Of a DNA stretch of 64,000 bases, positions 1,864 through 64,000 are shown piece by piece. The DNA comes from Vitrella brassicaformis CCMP3155. Lineage: Eukaryota; Protista; Chromerida. Positions within the stretch are counted from its first letter, which is position 1. Every line of letters starts with the position of its first letter. The translations under genes were made by a program, and so were the position numbers. The stretch lies in NCBI GenBank assembly GCA_001179505.1, contig CDMY01000226.1, positions 62,001 through 126,000 on the forward strand, given 5' to 3'. The notes under the pieces were generated by a model. The model worked only from the letters and a program-made list of their open reading frames with translations, made no database searches and had not been told where the DNA came from.

Positions 1864-4800
1864 ATGGATAGCACAGGTGCGCACAGAGAGAGCAGCCGCT
1901 GCCTCCTGTCCATGCATGCCGTCTGATCTGCTGCCGATTCGATTCTTCCGTTTGATTCCCAGACAAACCTCCCTCCATCTCCCGTGTGGTGTGCCTGTCC
2001 GTAGTCATGTTTGCGGACGCCCATCGGCCATACGCCGTCGCCCGCGGCCAAGCCGGCGGGACCTTCGCCGACGCCCAGACATGCCTCTCTGCTCCCTTTG
2101 CCAACCGGCTGGGCGTGCGGTTCTACCCCCACGTCAGCGGCACCTTGGGCGACGGGAGGCGGGACAACCGGCCGGCGTACCTGCGGCAGAGTGCGGAGTT
2201 CTTTTTGCGGCAGGTGGAGGACAGTGTCGATAAGGCGATGGGGCCGGTGGCGAGGGACGTGTCCGGACTGATCGCGGGGATCGGCCAGGAGTGCGGTGTT
2301 GGGGGGCTGCCGGTGGTGCCTTTGCTGTGCGGCCCGAGCGAGATCGACCAGGCCAACCTTATGCGCCTCCTCGCCAGCGAGCTGGCCGCCAGGCTCCCCG
2401 ACTGCCACATCGTCGACATATCCGACACGGATGGCGGCCTCTCGGCCCTGCTCAAGCGGCTGCCCTGCGGCACGGACACCCACACCCATTCCACAGATGC
2501 ACACGACGCACACCAAGATGACCAGCACACCCCTGCTGCCCCTGCTGCCCCCCAGCGCGAGCGCCGCAAGTCGACCGCACGGGCGAGTTTCGTGTCCAAG
2601 GGTGCGGAGCTGGCGAGGGAGGAGCAAGCCGAGCGGCGACGCAAGAAGCGCACCCAGGTGGACAGTGAGGATGAGGAGGGGGAGGGGGAGGCCATCGCGG
2701 ACCTCATCGACGACAATGGCGAGTCGCGGCTGGCCAACTGGTACCGCGAGGAGGCCGACAAGAAGGGCCGGCGGTTCTCCATTGTCGTGGTGGCGCGCGA
2801 CGTGGCGGCCATATCGATGTCGCTGCTCAAGTCCATCGGCTCCGTGCGGCAGGAGCATGGCATCTCCCTGTTCGTCGTCTTTGGTGTTGGGGCGGGGTGT
2901 CTGGAATTGCACATCCCACCCATGTGCTGCGAGATGGAGGCCGCCGGCCTCCCCATCTGTGTCCACCCCTACCAGCTGCTCGACGTGGCCGAGCTCATCA
3001 GAACCAGCGTCCTCCCCGCCCTCGTGCTGGGCCCCTCCCTTCTCCCCTTCCCCCTCTCACCGCACCACGTGACCGAGATCCGACAGGACATCGAGATGGG
3101 CAGCATCACCCTGTGGCAGTTTTGTCGGCGGGTCTGCCACCTAATTGTGGAGTTCTATCAGTCCCCATCCTCGGCGGTCGTGCGGCCCGAGGGGGGCGAC
3201 GACACGACGGCCGATGACACAGCTGGCGAAGGGGAGGGGTGGGACACCTGGGGAGCCGGCCCGGAGGAGATGGCCAAGAAGAAAATAGCGGCATTCCCTG
3301 CACCCCCCCAGTCAGCGGCAGCAGCAGCAGCTGCTGCGGCGCCCGCCAGTGCGGCCTTGAGCACCGGTCCGTCGTTCCCGGGCGATGCGGGTAAGGCCTT
3401 CGATGCGACGCGGTCTGTGGTGGCCTTCTACGAGGGTGCGGCCAAGCGGCTGGCGAAGCAGCAGGTGGCGCATCTGCAGGGGCTGGCGGCTGCCGCCTTG
3501 AGTAGGATGAATCGGAATCACGTCAAGGGGCTGCCTGAGGGAAGGGAGGCCGCCCGGGGGTACTACACCAGGCTGCTCAAGGCCATCAAGGACAATGCCA
3601 TCAAGGACAATGCAGGTGTGTGGATCTTCTGCGGCAGACAGACAGACAGACAATGCATCTCATCGGCTGTGCGTGTGGTTTTCTGTACTCTCCGTTGCTG
3701 TCAGATGACGGTTCCGTAGCGAGACTGATGGCGTGGCTGAGGAGTGCCCGAGAACGTCACGTGCTCGGCCTCAAGCTGTACCACCTGGCGGCGGTCGCCT
3801 TCAGCAACCAGGGCGTCAGCACGTCAGACGGCGCCTCACACCTCGACCTCGACAGACAGGAGGTCACCGGCATAATGGCCGCCACCGCCCCACGACAGCC
3901 TGACGAGCCCCAGCAACCGACAGGTGCGCTGCACACACTCACGGATCCAGACAGACAGACAGGCAGACAGACGTGGCGGTGTTTGTATCTGTCTGTGTCT
4001 GTGTCTGCAGGCATGAGCCCCATCCTCCCCCACGCCCCCATCCGCAGCCCCATCGCGGACCTCTCGCATCATGTGGACACCAACATGACCCGCAGCTTCA
4101 TCACCGCCGGCACGCAGAAGGGCAGCAGAGTGCCAAGTTTCCTTGACCAGGCCCGCCGGCTGCTGCGCCGAGAGATGCCCGCCCTCACGCAGAGGCAGAG
4201 GGACGCCCGAGGGATGCAACAGCAAGGAGGAGTGGGAGGGGTGGCGGACAAGGACGAGGCCGTCGTGGTCGAGTCGATTCAGTGGCTGATCGAGCTGCTC
4301 GAAGCCCTGCGTGGCGCCTACGCATTAGGCAAGGGCGGGGCTTCGAGCAGTGGGGCCAGGCAGGGCGACAGCAAGGCGTCGCTGCCCGCCGGCCTGCGGC
4401 AGCACCAGCAGGCGGTGCGGGCGTACGTCGACAGCAAGAAGCTCAGCAACTTCGAGCAGCGGATCAAGGCCGCCCAGGCCAAGGTGGCCGCCAATCGGCC
4501 GTCGGGGCCAGACCGTGATGCCCAGCTGCGCGAGTACGTGGCCTTCTGGCTGCACGAGACGCTCCTGGCCCTGCTCTCGCCCTTGGTGTGGGCGCGCCCC
4601 CTGTGCGACCGATTTCCTCTCCACTCGGGCGCCAGCCATGGTCTCGACGCGCACCAGCCCGCCGTCAGCACCCAGATAGCCATGGCGCAGGTGGCCAAGG
4701 GGCGGCAAATGCGGCTGCCCGACCTGACCGTCATGTACCGCCTGTACGAGAAGAACCCGGGTCTCAACATGCAGCTGCAGGACTGGTTCGTCGCCTTTGC

Positions 4801-5095
4801 TGAGACCATCGTGCAGCACGAGACTCCGCTGAGCCTGAGCCTGGTCTCCCTGCAGGCGCGGTTCGCCGTGTGTGTGGTGTCGCTCTCCCGCATGGGCGTT
4901 GTGAGCATGCCGGCCCACCACCTGGCGAGGGCCGCTGGGTGTCGTGGTTTGGACGACGAGGAGGACGGTGAGGAGGATAAGGGTGGTGTGGCGACCAAGC
5001 TGCCCAAGATGCTATTCGGCAAGGTGTGGTACACTGATGAGATGGAGAAGCAGGACAAGAACGACAAGATGCAACAGAAGCGACGCGCCTCCATG
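1864..5095 (+). CDS. ORC3: Origin recognition complex subunit 3-like module (N-terminal part of a probable ORC3-ORC2 fusion)
   Basis: ATG 1864, intron 1877-1962, then ORFs 1986-3719 and 3620-5431 linked by short introns. LPVVPLLCGPSEIDQANLMRLLASEL and RLANWYREE...IVVVARDVAAISMSLL...LFVVFGVG match the ORC3 AAA-like region. LPDLTVMYRLYEKNPGLNMQLQDWFVAF...LQARFAVCVVSLSRMGVV matches the ORC3 winged helix. Matches are to recalled sequences, not a search. Confidence 0.85.
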
Positions 5096-5217
5096 GTGGG
5101 CGAGCCGAGCCAGTCCCAGCAGACAGACAGACAGACAGGCGGATGCCGGCCATTCATTACCCATCGTCAACCTCCCTCTCCCTCTCTCTGTGCGTGTGTG
5201 TGTGTGTCTGTTGCCAG

Positions 5218-8111
5218 CCGGCTTACCTCCCTGCGGCCGCTGCAGCGGGCCTCTTCGGTGGCGGCCCGCCACGGAGACGCAACCGGGCAAGTCAGATCAG
5301 GGCCAACCAGACCAGCAATGACAACAAAGACGACAACGGCGAGCCCAGGACTCCCGATCGCCCAGCGCCGCCGGACCGGGCTTCCCAGGACGGCCCCCAC
5401 AGCCCCAGCCCCCACAGAAACCGAAACCTGAGCATTGCCAGGCACCAGAATTCGCAGCTCAAGAGCCGGATGTCTTTCAGACTCGAGAGGCTCGAGTCCA
5501 ACCACCGATTCCGCTTTGACGATGATCGCATGGAGACGCCGCCCCATTCCCCGCCGCGGCCCAAGGGCCAAGCCAAGCCGAAAGGTCGGCCGAAAGCGAA
5601 AGCCAAGCCAAAGGGTCGGCCGAAAGCGAAAGGGAAGGCGAGAGGCAGGAGTGGGGCCAAGGAGGTGGCGGCACGGAGAGGGGGGAGTGGGCGGGGGGCT
5701 GGTGCATCGGGTGGTGGGCCTGGCGAGGATCGCCGCCGGGAGGAGCAAGATGAGCCCGCGGACGTTGACGTCTGCCCGAGCCCGCAACCCTCCCGCAAGG
5801 GCCCCAAGAGCCCTCCGCGTGACGATGCCGGACAGCAGCAGAAGGCCAAGGACCACTCGGCCAGATCCAGCGATGAGCCCTTGGGGGGCAACCGCGGCCG
5901 ACTCAAGCGACGCAAGACACAGAAACTTGTTGGCCCGTCTGTTCCCCTGGCGTCCCAGCCGGCGCCCGTCGCCATGCCGCCTGTGGGCCCACAGCCAGGC
6001 GAGGACGACGGTGACATGTTCGCCATCGAAGAGGAGGAGGAGCAGCGCCGCCCTCCAGCCGCTGCCCGCCGCAGCAGCAAGCCACCGTCGGGACACCGAT
6101 CCGACGACATGGTGCCCGCTCCGGCTCTCAATCGCGAGCGTCGCCGTAGCATCGCCCCTGGCCGCCAGGTACAGTCTCGTGCTGAAGACTTCGGCCCTCT
6201 GGACGGCCTTGACCTCTTTCAGATGGGAGAGGACGACGAGGCACCACCAAAGCCACCCAGGGCGTCCCCTGCAGCTGCTGCAGCTGCGGCACCAGCATAC
6301 CGTCGACAGAATGACCGGACAGCAGCAGCAGCAGCAGCAGGTGGTGGGATGGGGGAGGCCGCTGGTGCGTCTAGGATCGGTGCGTGGCCTGTCGACGGAG
6401 GTGGCGGTGGTTGTGGCGGTGGTGGTGAGGAGGAGGCTGTGTTTGAGGCTGTGTCGCTGGATTGTGTGGGTGCCAACATCTACAGCAAGGACAGGCTTAG
6501 CTGCAAGCAGTCGAGGGCGCTGGCGTCGGGCAACGTGGGGGCGCTGGACCGCATTGCTGCGGGGACGGGAAGGGGAGGTGCGGCAGATAGCGGGAGGGGG
6601 TTGGCGGACATGGTCATAGCTATGCAGGAGGGCGAAGGGGCAGCCGGTGGGAATGTCGGCAAGGGCGGCCGCGGGTATGGGCCGGGCATCAAGAACAGGG
6701 TGAGTCAGACAGTGGGTGCGGGGCGGGGTGGATAATGGACGGCTGGTCTGTCTGTCTGTCTGTCTGTTGTGTGTGTGTGTGTGTATGTGTTTCTGGATGC
6801 AGTGGGACCACTGGCGACATCTGCTGCTGTCGGGCTTCTCGCTGTGCTTCTACGGCTTCGGCTCCAAGAAGAAGCTACTCAGAGAGTTCGTCCAACAGGG
6901 TCTCGCGTGAGCGTCCATCCTTTACCATTTGCACATCTACCGACACACCTAACCTACACACACATGAGTCCCATCCCTGTCTGTCTGTCTTCATTCACTG
7001 TCACTCCATCCATCCATCCATCAGGCCGCGTGAGGGCAACTGCTTCGTCGAGGTCTGCGGCTACGACAGCCGTCTGCTGGTCTCCCCGGCCGCCACCTCC
7101 CCCGAGCCCCTGCGAGCACCGCTCGAGAGGATGCTGCGCGACTCGGCGCAGCGGACCTTCATCATCCCCCAGCCAGAGGAGGAGACGTCAGAGGGGCGGA
7201 GGGACGAGGTGAGGGAGGCCCATCGGGTGCTGCAGAGGCACCACACCAATCTGACACACTCTCACCACACATCCAATAATGCTGACGACATGGCGACGGT
7301 AGTAGAGGTACGTAGGTGGGTCAGGTCAGGAGGGGAGAGAGAGGAGGTCAAAGTGGCGAGCAGTGAGTGCTTTCTTTGGTGGGCTGTGTTTGATGGTGAC
7401 ACATGTGGCTGTGTGTGGTGGGGTGCGTGTGGCGATTGATTGGTATATTCAGGAGTTCCTGTGCTGTGTGCGGGGGTCTCGGCAGCCGACGGTGCTGCTG
7501 GTGCACGGCCTCGACAGCACGCCACTGACCGACCCACAGACGCGCCAATACCTCACCCAACTCGCCAAAGAGCCAAAAGTAGGTACCAACCGACGCCCGC
7601 GTCTCGACACTGACCGACCCTCACCCTGCTGCAACACATACATACATGTGTCTGTCTGCCTGTCTGTGTGTCTTGTCTGTGCAGCTGTTGTTTGTAGCAT
7701 CTGTCGACAGGGTGGACTTCCCCTTTCTGTTCGCGCCGTCTGACCTGCAGGCCTACAACTTCTACTACACACAAGCACACACCGGCCTACAATACCTGTG
7801 AGTGAGCAACATGACCAACACAACGAACGCATCCCATCCCATCCCATCCAATGAATGCAATGCAACCTATACCTCCTCGAGTGGTTGGTTCTATTTATTG
7901 ATTGATCAGGTGTGAGGTGGCGGGGTCTCTGGGCGATACCGAGCCCAGCTGGTGGAGGAAGATGCGGCCGGTGCAAAGGAAGAAGGCCAGGGCGGTCCGC
8001 CTCTCTGCCCCAGCCAAGGGCCAGGGTGGTGGGCGCCGGAGGGCTTCTCGCAACAGTGACAATGACCATGGCAACGACGGGCAGGGTGTAGATATGGACA
8101 TAGACGACTGA
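5218..8111 (+). CDS. ORC2: Origin recognition complex subunit 2-like module preceded by a long low-complexity linker
   Basis: Disordered exon 5218-6699. Exons from 6803, about 7025, 7452, 7684 and 7910 give WDHWRHLLLSGFSLCFYGFGSKKKLLREF, FVEVCGYDS, VLLVHGLDSTPLTDPQTRQYLTQLA and LLFVASVDRVDFPFLF..YNFYYTQAHT. These follow ORC2 motif order (human GFNIVLYGLGSKRDLL, LLIHNLDS, LIASIDHLNAPLMW). Stop at 8111. Confidence 0.85.
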
Positions 8112-8599
8112 CTGACTGACTGACTGACCTGCCTGCTTACGCGCTCATTCCTTCACCATTCATGTCATGTGCTGTGCTGGGGTGTGGTGCTGTGGTGCGG
8201 TGTGCATTCACTGCGTGTGCACACTGTGTGTGAAGATCGATCGACATGTCGGATGAGTAGACTTTGTTTGGGGTGTGGTGTGTTGTGTTGTTCGTATGTG
8301 ACTGACTTGGATGGGATGGGGTGTACGGAGGAAGGTCTGTTGGATAGACACATACTCATTGGAATGACCTGACTGACCACATACATTTGGTTGACAAACG
8401 AAAGGGACGGACGGCAATCTGACTGATTCCACACGCACGCACGCCTAACCCAAAAACCAACTCATTCATGTCTGTCTGTCTGTCTGTCTCTGTCTGTCTC
8501 TGTCTGTCTGCACTCATCTCTCTCTCGCCACACCAGACGACCAGATCCCATCACACCACAGTCAGTCCACCACAGCACGAACGAAACAGCACATGAGCA

Positions 8600-9815
8600 C
8601 TAGCGCTTCCGTCTGCTGTCGTCCGCCTCTCGAGCGTCGCCACTGTTTTCGTCCATCTGCATGGCCGCCATATCAACCTACACACACACACACACACACA
8701 CACAGAGTCAGACACACACTTTGAAAGCACAGCTCAGATGACAGACACTCAGCCTGCCTGCCTCGGTGCCCACAAACATACATGCTGTTTGAACACTGGC
8801 CAGTCGACCTCCCCCGAGCGATCCTTCCGCAGCCCCAGCCTTTCCAGCAGCCCCGGCCCCCTCCCGCCACCATCCCTCGCGCCACCCAGCCACGGAGGGC
8901 TCAGGTTCAGACCCGTCAGCAGCTGACCCGATGGCCGCTGGGAGCCGTCCCAGCTCCTCAGCTCATTGCCCATCGACGGCTGGTTAAGCTGGTGTGTCTG
9001 AAGCTGCCTTCTCCGCTCTGCGTGTCGTGTTGCCCACGACTGCAGCTGCCGCGAGACGTCCTCTTTGCGCAGGTAGAGCTTGTCGCCGGCGAGGCTGAAG
9101 AAGAGCGCCTCGAGGGCCTCGTCCCTGATGGGCTCCTTCCACGCCGCATCGTTGACGCGCTGGCGCAACTCAGGACTGTCCTGAACACACACACAAAGCA
9201 ACACACACACAAAGCACCCAACTCAACTTACTTTTACGTGACTCTCCACCCCATATATAGCTTCTCTGGCTGGCTGGCTGGCTGCACGCCCCACGCATTC
9301 ACCGGTTCCCTCGAGAAGCCCTTTTCGTAACTGTAGAGGAGGTAGAAGGGGAACTTGGCCTCCTCGGGCCACCTGAACGGCAGCTGCTGCACACACGCCT
9401 TAAACGACCTCTTGCTCAGTACGGGCTTTTCGTCAAACAGCGCCTCCCACCGTGGCGGTGTGCCGCCGCCCATGACGCTCCCCGCCCGCCGGGTCCGCAC
9501 TGCCGTGGACCAGTCCGCCGTCTGCTCGGCCAGCCGGCCATAAATCTTGATCAGATCTTGGACTTCGTAGCGGAACTTGGGGTCAGCCGAGTAGAAGGTG
9601 GGGTCAAAGGTGCTGCGGAAGGCGATGTTGGGCGGCCGGTGGCGGACGGCTGACGAGAGGACGGGCAGGAGGGCACAGAGGGAGAGGAAGGTTGGGAGCA
9701 GGGGAGGAGGAGGCGATGAATGAATGGCTGACGCACGGGACTCGCACTTGCTGGACTGCTCGGCAGTAGCTTCCTCTCTATCATGGCTCATCGGATCTCC
9801 TCTCGCCCTGGTCAT
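8600..9815 (-). CDS. Hypothetical protein with degenerate EF-hand-like motifs
   Basis: Exons at about 9815-9735, 9650-9303, 9180-8765 and 8676-8600 splice in frame and end DDSRRKR*. Contains DEALEALFFSLAGDKLYLRKEDV and KDRSGEVDWPVFKQHV. The start codon could be 9815 or 9791. Confidence 0.65.
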
Positions 9816-63793: not shown

Positions 63794-64000
63794 CGCTGCA
63801 AGGCAGCTGGCGAAGCAGCGGGAACACGCGGTCTTGTCTCGCCCAGTAGAAGCAAGCAGCGCCAGTCAGGGAAAGCGCTCAAAGAGCTCGGCGCGCTGCC
63901 GTTGATGCCTTTCAAAGGGGTTTCTTGGCCGTCAGTCACGTCAGAAGCCAGGCAAGTGAAGTGAAGCAGACAGGAAGATCAGTCAAGCAAAGCGACGCAA

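Follow-up and report, generated by a model that had tools for sequence, protein, structure and literature searches.

A divergent ORC3 and the core of ORC2 are probably encoded as one polypeptide in the alga Vitrella brassicaformis

Background

ORC is the complex that marks DNA replication origins, and ORC2 and ORC3 are neighbouring subunits of it. In the ORC ring, ORC3 has ORC5 as one neighbour and its binding partner ORC2 as the other. Structures of Drosophila, human and yeast ORC show the winged helix of Orc3 packed against the RecA-like fold of Orc2. In human ORC the winged helix of ORC2 plugs the DNA channel, and the disordered tails of ORC subunits serve elsewhere in cell-cycle control and non-specific DNA contact. 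To our knowledge, ORC2 and ORC3 form a stable core pair and are separately encoded in every studied eukaryote. A preliminary description of the locus reported here knew of no ORC3-ORC2 fusion, and in the literature that could be searched we likewise came across no report of ORC3 and ORC2 occurring naturally as a single chain.

Vitrella brassicaformis is a free-living photosynthetic alga related to the apicomplexan parasites, and one of its predicted proteins combines features of both subunits. With ORC2 (Drosophila 7jgr_B, human 7cte_B, yeast 5v8f_B) it shares the RecA-like core motifs GF.L.FYGFGSKK and LLVH.LD...L, preceded as in ORC2 by a tail that is long, basic and disordered and contains CDK-type sites; unlike in free ORC2, the core is not a protein of its own and its tail is continuous with the ORC3-like half. 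With ORC3 (Drosophila 4xgc_C, human 8rwv_C) it appears to share the overall domain order, in which an alpha/beta domain at the N-terminus is followed by a long helical region and, at the C-terminus, by a winged helix with the motif LPDL..(V/M)Y.L...G..(I/M).L.DW..AF, whereas the Vitrella half lacks a stop codon at its end and continues into ORC2. This half is 976 aa long and has disordered inserts, the Drosophila Orc3 chains having 676-721 aa, and its divergence by far exceeds that of any ORC3 within reach of sequence searches.

Results

Gene structure and public model

The window analysed is a 64,000-nt stretch of contig CDMY01000226.1 of V. brassicaformis CCMP3155, with the gene at positions 1864-8111 on the plus strand. 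The model comprises 11 exons, all on the plus strand, and translates without a stop up to 8109-8111. The public model CEL94746.1 / A0A0G4EFH5 (1727 aa), whose CDS range corresponds to window positions 1864-8111, is already a single ORC3-ORC2 fusion protein, named after its ORC2 domain only. The two models are the same except for the intron-1 acceptor, the position of which is uncertain: exon 2 starts at 1963 in the model implied by the preliminary description and at 2005 in the public model, both in frame. The features, in window coordinates, are as follows.

1864..1876, plus strand: exon 1 (ATG GAT AGC ACA G), with the start codon of the public model (sequence; CEL94746.1 CDS range)
1963..3615, plus strand: exon 2, ORC3-like N-terminal half, an alpha/beta AAA+-like region with disordered inserts (X5 RNA contig 2300-3612)
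3705..3923, plus strand: exon 3, middle part of the ORC3-like half (X5 contig 5, piece 3702-3924)
3616-3704 and 3924-4010, plus strand: introns on either side of exon 3, spliced out (X5 contig 5; sequence)
4011..5095, plus strand: exon 4, ORC3-like helical region and C-terminal winged helix (RNA contigs X5, X6)
About 4682-4915, plus strand: best ORC_WH_C / Drosophila Orc3 match, in exon 4 (Pfam, phmmer)
5096..5217, plus strand: the fusing intron, 122 nt, GT..AG, with (CAGA)n and (TG)n tracts (spliced out in X5 contig 5 and X6 contig 9)
5218-6168 and 6223-6699, plus strand: linker exons (RNA contigs 5220-5665, 5713-6165, 6220-6698)
6169-6222, plus strand: 54-nt intron between the linker exons (RNA contigs X5, X6)
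5578..5649, plus strand: basic patch with two tandem KPKGRPKAK motifs (motif scan, charge windows)
5666..5712, plus strand: stretch between RNA contigs in X5 (contig ends, bin depths)
6694..7919, plus strand: ORC2 RecA-like domain, residues 1451-1664 (Pfam PF04084, phmmer, RNA junctions)
6803-6906, 7025-7307, 7453-7578, 7685-7797 and the start of 7910-8111, plus strand: exons carrying the ORC2 domain after the linker exon
7910..8111, plus strand: last exon, in which the RecA-like match ends and a low-complexity basic/acidic tail of 62 residues leads to the stop 8109-8111 (RNA contigs)

Transcript evidence across the junction

The ORC3-like frame ends in ...KRRASM at 5093-5095, followed by a GT at 5096-5097 and an AG at 5216-5217; the preliminary description had placed the intron here, and its coordinates, length and repeat tracts are all correct on the sequence. 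The splice that it predicted, 5095|5218, is the one used in RNA-derived contigs of two different studies (X5 and X6), and it joins the frames in phase. Contig 5 of X5 aligns to 2300-3612, 3702-3924, 4013-5095 and 5220-5665, and contig 9 of X6 to 4238-5095 and 5220-5552, the 2-nt offsets at 5218/5220 being aligner ambiguity. None of the listed RNA contigs retains the intron 5096-5217, and none uses the acceptor at 5244-5245 (junction 5246), which had been put forward as an alternative that would stop ORC3 at 5431. The spliced contigs extend to 5552 (X6) and 5665 (X5), beyond both that stop and the ATG at 5470, and transcripts of ORC3 alone ending before about 5450, which would have counted against a fusion, were not seen among them. 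Contigs have no power for transcript ends, transcript starts or rare isoforms. From 5095|5218 there is no in-frame stop until 8109, and an ORC3-only mRNA with that junction would therefore be stop-less.

Downstream, the linker frame had been described as open to the donor at 6700. It is indeed stop-free, but it is not one exon, since the RNA contigs (X5, X6) excise a GT..AG intron at 6169-6222 that is in frame and removes 18 codons. All ORC2 exon junctions are confirmed in RNA contigs (X1, X5, X6; including X1 contig 1 and X5 contig 6), and from 7910 to past 8200 the contigs are unspliced, confirming the stop at 8109-8111. The sole stretch of the gene without a listed X5 contig is the 47 nt at 5666-5712, which is rich in G runs (G6, G3, G6, G3, G3); the corresponding hole in X6 is 5553-5701. 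Read depth is alike to the left and right of the hole (104.8 vs 87 in X5, 12.2 vs 13.3 in X6). The listed contigs stop on either side of 5666-5712, and we infer that a single mRNA runs uninterrupted across it. The same X5 contig that spans the splice junction appears merged with the divergent upstream gene, so that contig continuity alone is weak evidence of one transcript.

The frame entered after removal of 5096-5217 is the only one that is stop-free across 5098-6699, the other two having 2 and 17 stops. At the GC content of this DNA (66-68%) open frames are cheap, as the non-coding frame with just 2 stops illustrates, and the weight of the argument rests on the RNA junction and on third-position GC bias, not on ORF length. 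The exons of ORC3 and ORC2 have a third-position GC of 0.83-0.86, and over 5218-5469 it is 0.77 in the fusion frame vs 0.65 in the frame that would extend ORC3.

The ORC2 half

On sequence grounds the C-terminal half can be firmly assigned to ORC2. Residues 1451-1664 match the Pfam family RecA-like_ORC2 (PF04084) with 101.6 bits against a cutoff of 25.1, over profile positions 40-206 of 251, the domain starting two codons before the end of the linker exon (6694-6699). In phmmer searches the Drosophila, human and yeast Orc2 chains were the sole PDB matches (E 1e-9 to 5e-5). In contrast to known ORC2, the profile is matched no further than position 206 of 251, Drosophila Orc2 aligns only up to residue 501 of 618, and the winged helix is undetectable: residues 1660-1727 gave no Pfam match to WHD_ORC2 (PF24882) at E up to 10, whereas a control ORC2 (P0002) scored 54.3 bits. 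Only 62 low-complexity residues follow the core, and there is no plausible exon downstream before the next gene, which lies on the minus strand.

The ORC3-like half

Residues 1 to about 976 are best regarded as a very divergent ORC3, a view supported by four weak lines of evidence that converge, each of them below a curated threshold. The only Pfam match in this half is to ORC_WH_C (PF18137), with 23.9 bits (E 5e-5) against a cutoff of 26.4, falling to 17.2 bits with the whole protein as query; ORC3_N (PF07034) gave no match in this half at E up to 10. Of the two modules that the preliminary description expected to hit their ORC profiles, ORC2 does so strongly, and the ORC3 side, though it has no ORC3_N match, does not miss entirely. 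The best PDB match by phmmer is the winged helix of Drosophila Orc3 (4xgc_C/7jgr_C; E 0.05), at the equivalent C-terminal position. In language-model features, the neighbours of residues 1-560 are all ORC3_N clusters (0.93-0.95, with more than 200 of 256 features in common), and ORC4 and ORC5 score only about 0.82. With the AlphaFold model (mean pLDDT 41), the best 12 Foldseek matches are ORC3 chains from human and fly ORC, the best at E 8.7e-4, with TM-scores of 0.10-0.16 on this low-confidence model. ORC3 is the nearest family by both language-model features and Foldseek. A sequence search among 1.84 billion representatives found no homologues of this half.

The linker

The two halves are joined by 476 residues (977-1452) that are disordered, rich in A, G, R and P, matched by no Pfam family, and stand in for the usual N-terminal tail of ORC2. 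The linker bears four [ST]Px[KR] CDK-consensus sites and a basic patch with a net charge of +15 over 40 residues and two AT-hook-like GRP motifs, from which a role of the patch in DNA binding may be predicted.

Discussion

A single chain or separate products

The explanation that best accounts for these observations, and that we consider quite likely, is that one nuclear gene and one mRNA give rise to a single chain of 1727 residues, made up of a divergent ORC3, a disordered linker and the ORC2 RecA-like core. The single polypeptide proposed in the preliminary description is borne out by the RNA junction, the public model and the strong ORC2 Pfam match. The fused mRNA might nevertheless exist while ORC3 and ORC2 are mainly made as two products, ORC3 through an isoform that retains the intron or uses the 5246 acceptor and stops at 5431, and ORC2 either from a separate transcript or by internal initiation, at ATG 5470 or another in-frame ATG further on. 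If the intron is kept, the ORC3 frame does reach a stop at 5429-5431, 38 nt upstream of the in-frame ATG 5470, a layout that resembles the remnant of two adjacent genes; moreover, the contigs of both runs are broken within 5553-5712, and contigs lose rare variants and are blind to transcript starts. We nevertheless consider two products improbable, as the form assembled in both runs is the one spliced 5095|5218, and the listed contigs contain neither the intron nor the 5246 junction. The break looks like a coverage artefact because its end points are not the same in the two data sets (5552/5702 vs 5665/5713) and fall on G runs; RNA depth is alike on its two sides, and the higher third-position GC in 5218-5469 belongs to the fusion frame and not to the ORC3 extension.

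There is a similarly small chance that a single translation product is cut within the linker into separate mature ORC3 and ORC2, with the fusion serving co-expression only. The linker, being disordered and having many basic and dibasic sites, would be accessible to proteases, but Pfam reveals no recognisable cleavage module or protease domain, and long disordered N-terminal tails are usual in ORC2 and stay uncut in the species studied. Slightly less probable still is that the first 976 residues belong to a different AAA+-like protein, known or novel, joined to ORC2 and that Vitrella truly has no ORC3. The absent ORC3_N match, the ORC_WH_C score under its cutoff, the lack of homologues in the sequence search, the poor structure model and the published call of ORC3 as absent would all fit such a protein; against it, four independent kinds of test (Pfam, PDB sequence search, language-model features at up to 0.95 and Foldseek with 12 ORC3 chains on top) rank ORC3 first with nothing else close, and the winged helix is matched where ORC3 has it, at the C-terminal end.

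Meaning of the architecture

If the single fused chain is what the cell makes, residues 1 to about 976 would form the ORC3 part, with an AAA+-like N-terminal domain, a helical region and a C-terminal winged helix, and the linker would in effect correspond to the N-terminal tail of free ORC2 proteins. The two halves would stay in one polypeptide and fold side by side as in the ORC ring, with the linker looping out of the folded pair, and the fusion would secure 1:1 stoichiometry and co-assembly of ORC2 and ORC3. The covalent link between an ORC3-like protein and ORC2 is consistent with the position of ORC3 in the ring and no proof of it. By analogy with ORC tails elsewhere, the CDK sites and basic patch of the linker may function in cell-cycle regulation and in contacting DNA non-specifically. 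Without a detectable winged helix on ORC2, auto-inhibition of the human type would be absent or otherwise supplied. More speculatively, and rather less likely than not in our estimation, Vitrella may have neither free ORC3 nor free ORC2 and may build its ORC from covalent ORC3-ORC2 chains, in two old and highly diverged paralogous versions that would give two ORC forms directed to different chromatin; the version described here would be the one whose linker is basic, AT-hook-like and rich in CDK sites and whose ORC2 part lacks the winged helix.

A published survey of ORC subunits lists two orc2 and no orc3 for Vitrella, and one ORC3 for each of the other myzozoans that retain ORC2 (PMC7058166, Suppl. 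Table 1). The absence of ORC3 in that survey is probably explained by an ORC3 concealed inside a protein named ORC2, which would correct a call of ORC3 as lost and ORC2 as duplicated in this alga. Because ORC3 is scored as missing from eukaryotes more often than any other subunit, other reported losses of ORC3 may be hidden likewise. The Vitrella chain offers a natural test case of how much freedom is needed between ORC2 and ORC3 in the ORC ring, and of whether a working ORC requires a recognisable winged helix on ORC2. Since Vitrella is a relative of the apicomplexans, its architecture may aid the reconstruction of their divergent replication machinery.

Structure of the gene and its public record

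The exon chain that we rebuilt from the sequence translates as one open reading frame down to the stop at 8109-8111, and every intron in it is GT..AG and 54-145 nt long. The fusion of ORC3-like and ORC2-like coding sequence is already present in the public gene model, where it is unremarked. The encoded protein has a sole database record (CEL94746.1 / UniProt A0A0G4EFH5, from contig CDMY01000226.1 of GCA_001179505.1, with window position 1864 at record position 63864), which UniProt names only 'Origin recognition complex subunit 2 RecA-like domain-containing protein'. The public model of 1727 aa and the rebuilt one differ solely in the acceptor of intron 1 (2005 in the public model, with 1963 as the rebuilt alternative).

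Features of the fusion gene and its upstream neighbour (exon chain rebuilt from sequence)
1864-1876, + strand, exon 1
1963 (or 2005)-3615, + strand, exon 2
3705-3923, + strand, exon 3
4011-5095, + strand, exon 4, final residues ...KRRASM
5218-6168, + strand, exon 5
6223-6699, + strand, exon 6
6803-6906, + strand, exon 7
7025-7307, + strand, exon 8
7453-7578, + strand, exon 9
7685-7797, + strand, exon 10
7910-8111, + strand, exon 11
3616-3704, 3924-4010, 5096-5217, 6700-6802, 6907-7024 and 7579-7684, + strand, introns with repeat tracts, by motif content
5578-5649, + strand, tandem pair of KPKGRPKAK motifs
within 1-1863 (ATG at 1538), - strand, upstream neighbour gene, 472 aa, no Pfam hit on record

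Most introns of the gene contain (CAGA)n or its complement (TCTG)n together with (TG)n, (CATC)n or (CCAT)n tracts, and its 3' UTR opens with (CTGA)n (within 8112-8600). Read depth is more than 100-fold higher at the intronic tandem-repeat tracts in all four runs, and these motifs are therefore repeated genome-wide. The read-junction table was dominated by (CAGA)n and like repeats and was left unused.

Spliced RNA across the fusing intron

The preliminary description placed the end of the ORC3-like frame (...KRRASM) at 5095, a GT donor at 5096 and an AG acceptor at 5216-5217, and these coordinates proved exact. The intron so bounded is 122 nt long, and its removal therefore shifts the frame; the frame entered after the 5095|5218 splice is the only one without a stop across 5098-6699. 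The same junction is used in RNA by contigs assembled from two sequencing runs, X5 and X6, which represent separate samples and studies; all of the RNA contig evidence comes from a single alignment of contigs to the window. These contigs are RNA-derived, because the introns are absent from them. X5 contig 5 (5340 nt) is placed at 2300-3612, 3702-3924, 4013-5095 and 5220-5665, and X6 contig 9 at 4238-5095 and 5220-5552. Both pass the stop at 5431 and the ATG at 5470, where a separate ORC3 would end and a separate ORC2 might begin if an acceptor at 5244-5245 were used; that acceptor (exon start 5246) is used by no listed RNA contig, and we reject it as the main form.

Further downstream, X5 contig 6 and X6 contig 10 cover 5713 (X6: 5702)-6165 and 6220-6698, a continuation of X5 contig 6 reaches the ORC2 exons, and contig 1 of another run, X1, has all ORC2 junctions (6906|7025, 7307|7453, 7578|7685 and 7797|7910) and extends about 300 nt beyond 8200. 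The X5 and X6 contigs also amend the gene structure first proposed: its fusing junction stands, but the linker, drawn as a single exon, is interrupted by a 54-nt intron at 6169-6222. This GT..AG intron is a multiple of three and stop-free, so that its retention would add just 18 residues and both forms are in frame. Gene structure and spliced RNA together give good support to the fusion.

The listed contigs leave a hole at 5666-5712 in X5 and at 5553-5701 in X6. An intron hidden there was considered and rejected: 5666-5712 has neither GT..AG nor CT..AC ends, and the break points of X5 and X6 differ. Contig depths flanking the hole are similar (104.8 vs 87; 12.2 vs 13.3), and we infer a coverage or assembly artefact. 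The sense strand of 5666-5712 contains G runs of G6, G3, G6, G3 and G3, and drop-out in reverse transcription or sequencing at this G-quadruplex-like sequence may be responsible. On its 5' side, X5 contig 5 extends 2272 nt beyond 2300; additional coding exons there were considered and rejected, since the length of this extension fits a merge with the divergent minus-strand neighbour. Because the contig likely merges two genes, its continuity alone is no proof of one transcript, and the one-transcript argument rests on the in-phase splice. Once 5095|5218 is spliced there is no in-frame stop before 8109, so an ORC3-only mRNA with this junction would have no stop codon.

The neighbour and the fusion gene are transcribed divergently, with 325 nt between their ATGs. 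X5 contig 5 appears to pass through both, which suggests either that their 5' ends overlap or that a bidirectional promoter between them is transcribed throughout.

Identity of the two halves and the linker

Judged by sequence, the identity of the ORC2 half is firm: residues 1451-1664 match PF04084 with 101.6 bits in a Pfam search, and the sole PDB sequence matches are Orc2 chains of fly, human and yeast. The match covers the profile only to position 206 of 251 and Drosophila Orc2 only to residue 501 of 618, and is followed by 62 low-complexity residues, basic then acidic, and the stop (exon 7910-8111). In an ordinary ORC2 the core is followed by a winged-helix domain, whereas the core of the Vitrella protein ends without one. 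The Pfam search found no ORC2 winged helix here, against 54 bits in a control ORC2 (P0002, 468 aa), and no downstream coding for it is possible because the next gene lies on the opposite strand. In functional terms, the lack of this domain is the more unusual trait. When the ORC2 part (in the long and the normal length class) and the ORC3 part were used in word-indexed protein searches, only the protein itself and the unrelated P0002 came back, a result that is uninformative on sharing of the fusion by Chromera, colpodellids, dinoflagellates or apicomplexans.

The ORC3 half is very divergent at the sequence level. Pfam gave no ORC3_N match in it, and its only match, to ORC_WH_C, scores 23.9 bits, below the cutoff of 26.4; phmmer with the ORC3 C-terminal exon against 1.84 billion representatives returned only the protein itself, and with the N-terminal exon against the PDB nothing relevant. 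Among PDB sequences, the ORC3 half aligns best with the C-terminal winged helix of Drosophila Orc3 (LPDLSVVYKL...DWLQAF...QARF, E 0.05). The language-model neighbours of residues 1-560 are all ORC3_N clusters (0.93-0.95, with ORC4/ORC5 clusters at about 0.82; 0.92 for the whole protein). In Foldseek the top 12 places go to human and fly ORC3 chains (best E 8.7e-4), a ranking taken only as a weak pointer, since the AlphaFold2 model, run without an alignment, has a pLDDT of 41 and its TM-scores are meaningless. These four independent kinds of test (Pfam, PDB sequence, language model and Foldseek) agree, and the N-terminal half is very probably ORC3.

The linker (residues 977-1452) is A/G/R/P-rich and almost without hydrophobic residues, and resembles the disordered N-terminal tail found in ordinary ORC2 proteins. 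The protein has four full CDK-consensus sites, all of them within the linker. A linker patch of charge +15 contains the two KPKGRPKAK motifs, which are AT-hook-like with a GRP core; at the DNA level they form a near-perfect direct repeat, and the pair may be a DNA-contact element.

Probable origin and significance of the fusion

Retention of the fusing intron would end the ORC3 frame at 5431, and the in-frame ATG at 5470 follows 38 nt later. The gene may have arisen when a new intron linked two closely spaced tandem genes, of which this stop and ATG would be the trace. Third-position GC across 5218-5469 is 0.77 in the fusion frame vs 0.65 in the ORC3-extension frame, which favours the fusion frame. 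In solved ORC structures Orc3 adjoins Orc2 in the ring, and the Orc3 winged helix sits on the Orc2 core; a chain running from ORC3 through a flexible tail to the ORC2 core therefore faces little steric difficulty. Such a chain would fix ORC3:ORC2 at 1:1.

Ocana-Pallares et al. 2020 (PMC7058166, Suppl. Table 1) list two orc2 and no orc3 for Vitrella, whereas in that table every other myzozoan retaining ORC2 has a single ORC2 and one or more ORC3. The fusion gene probably accounts for one of the two Vitrella ORC2 calls and for the apparent loss of ORC3. We found no description of a natural ORC3-ORC2 fusion in the open-access literature, and architecturally the Vitrella fusion is a novel version of ORC subunits that are already known.
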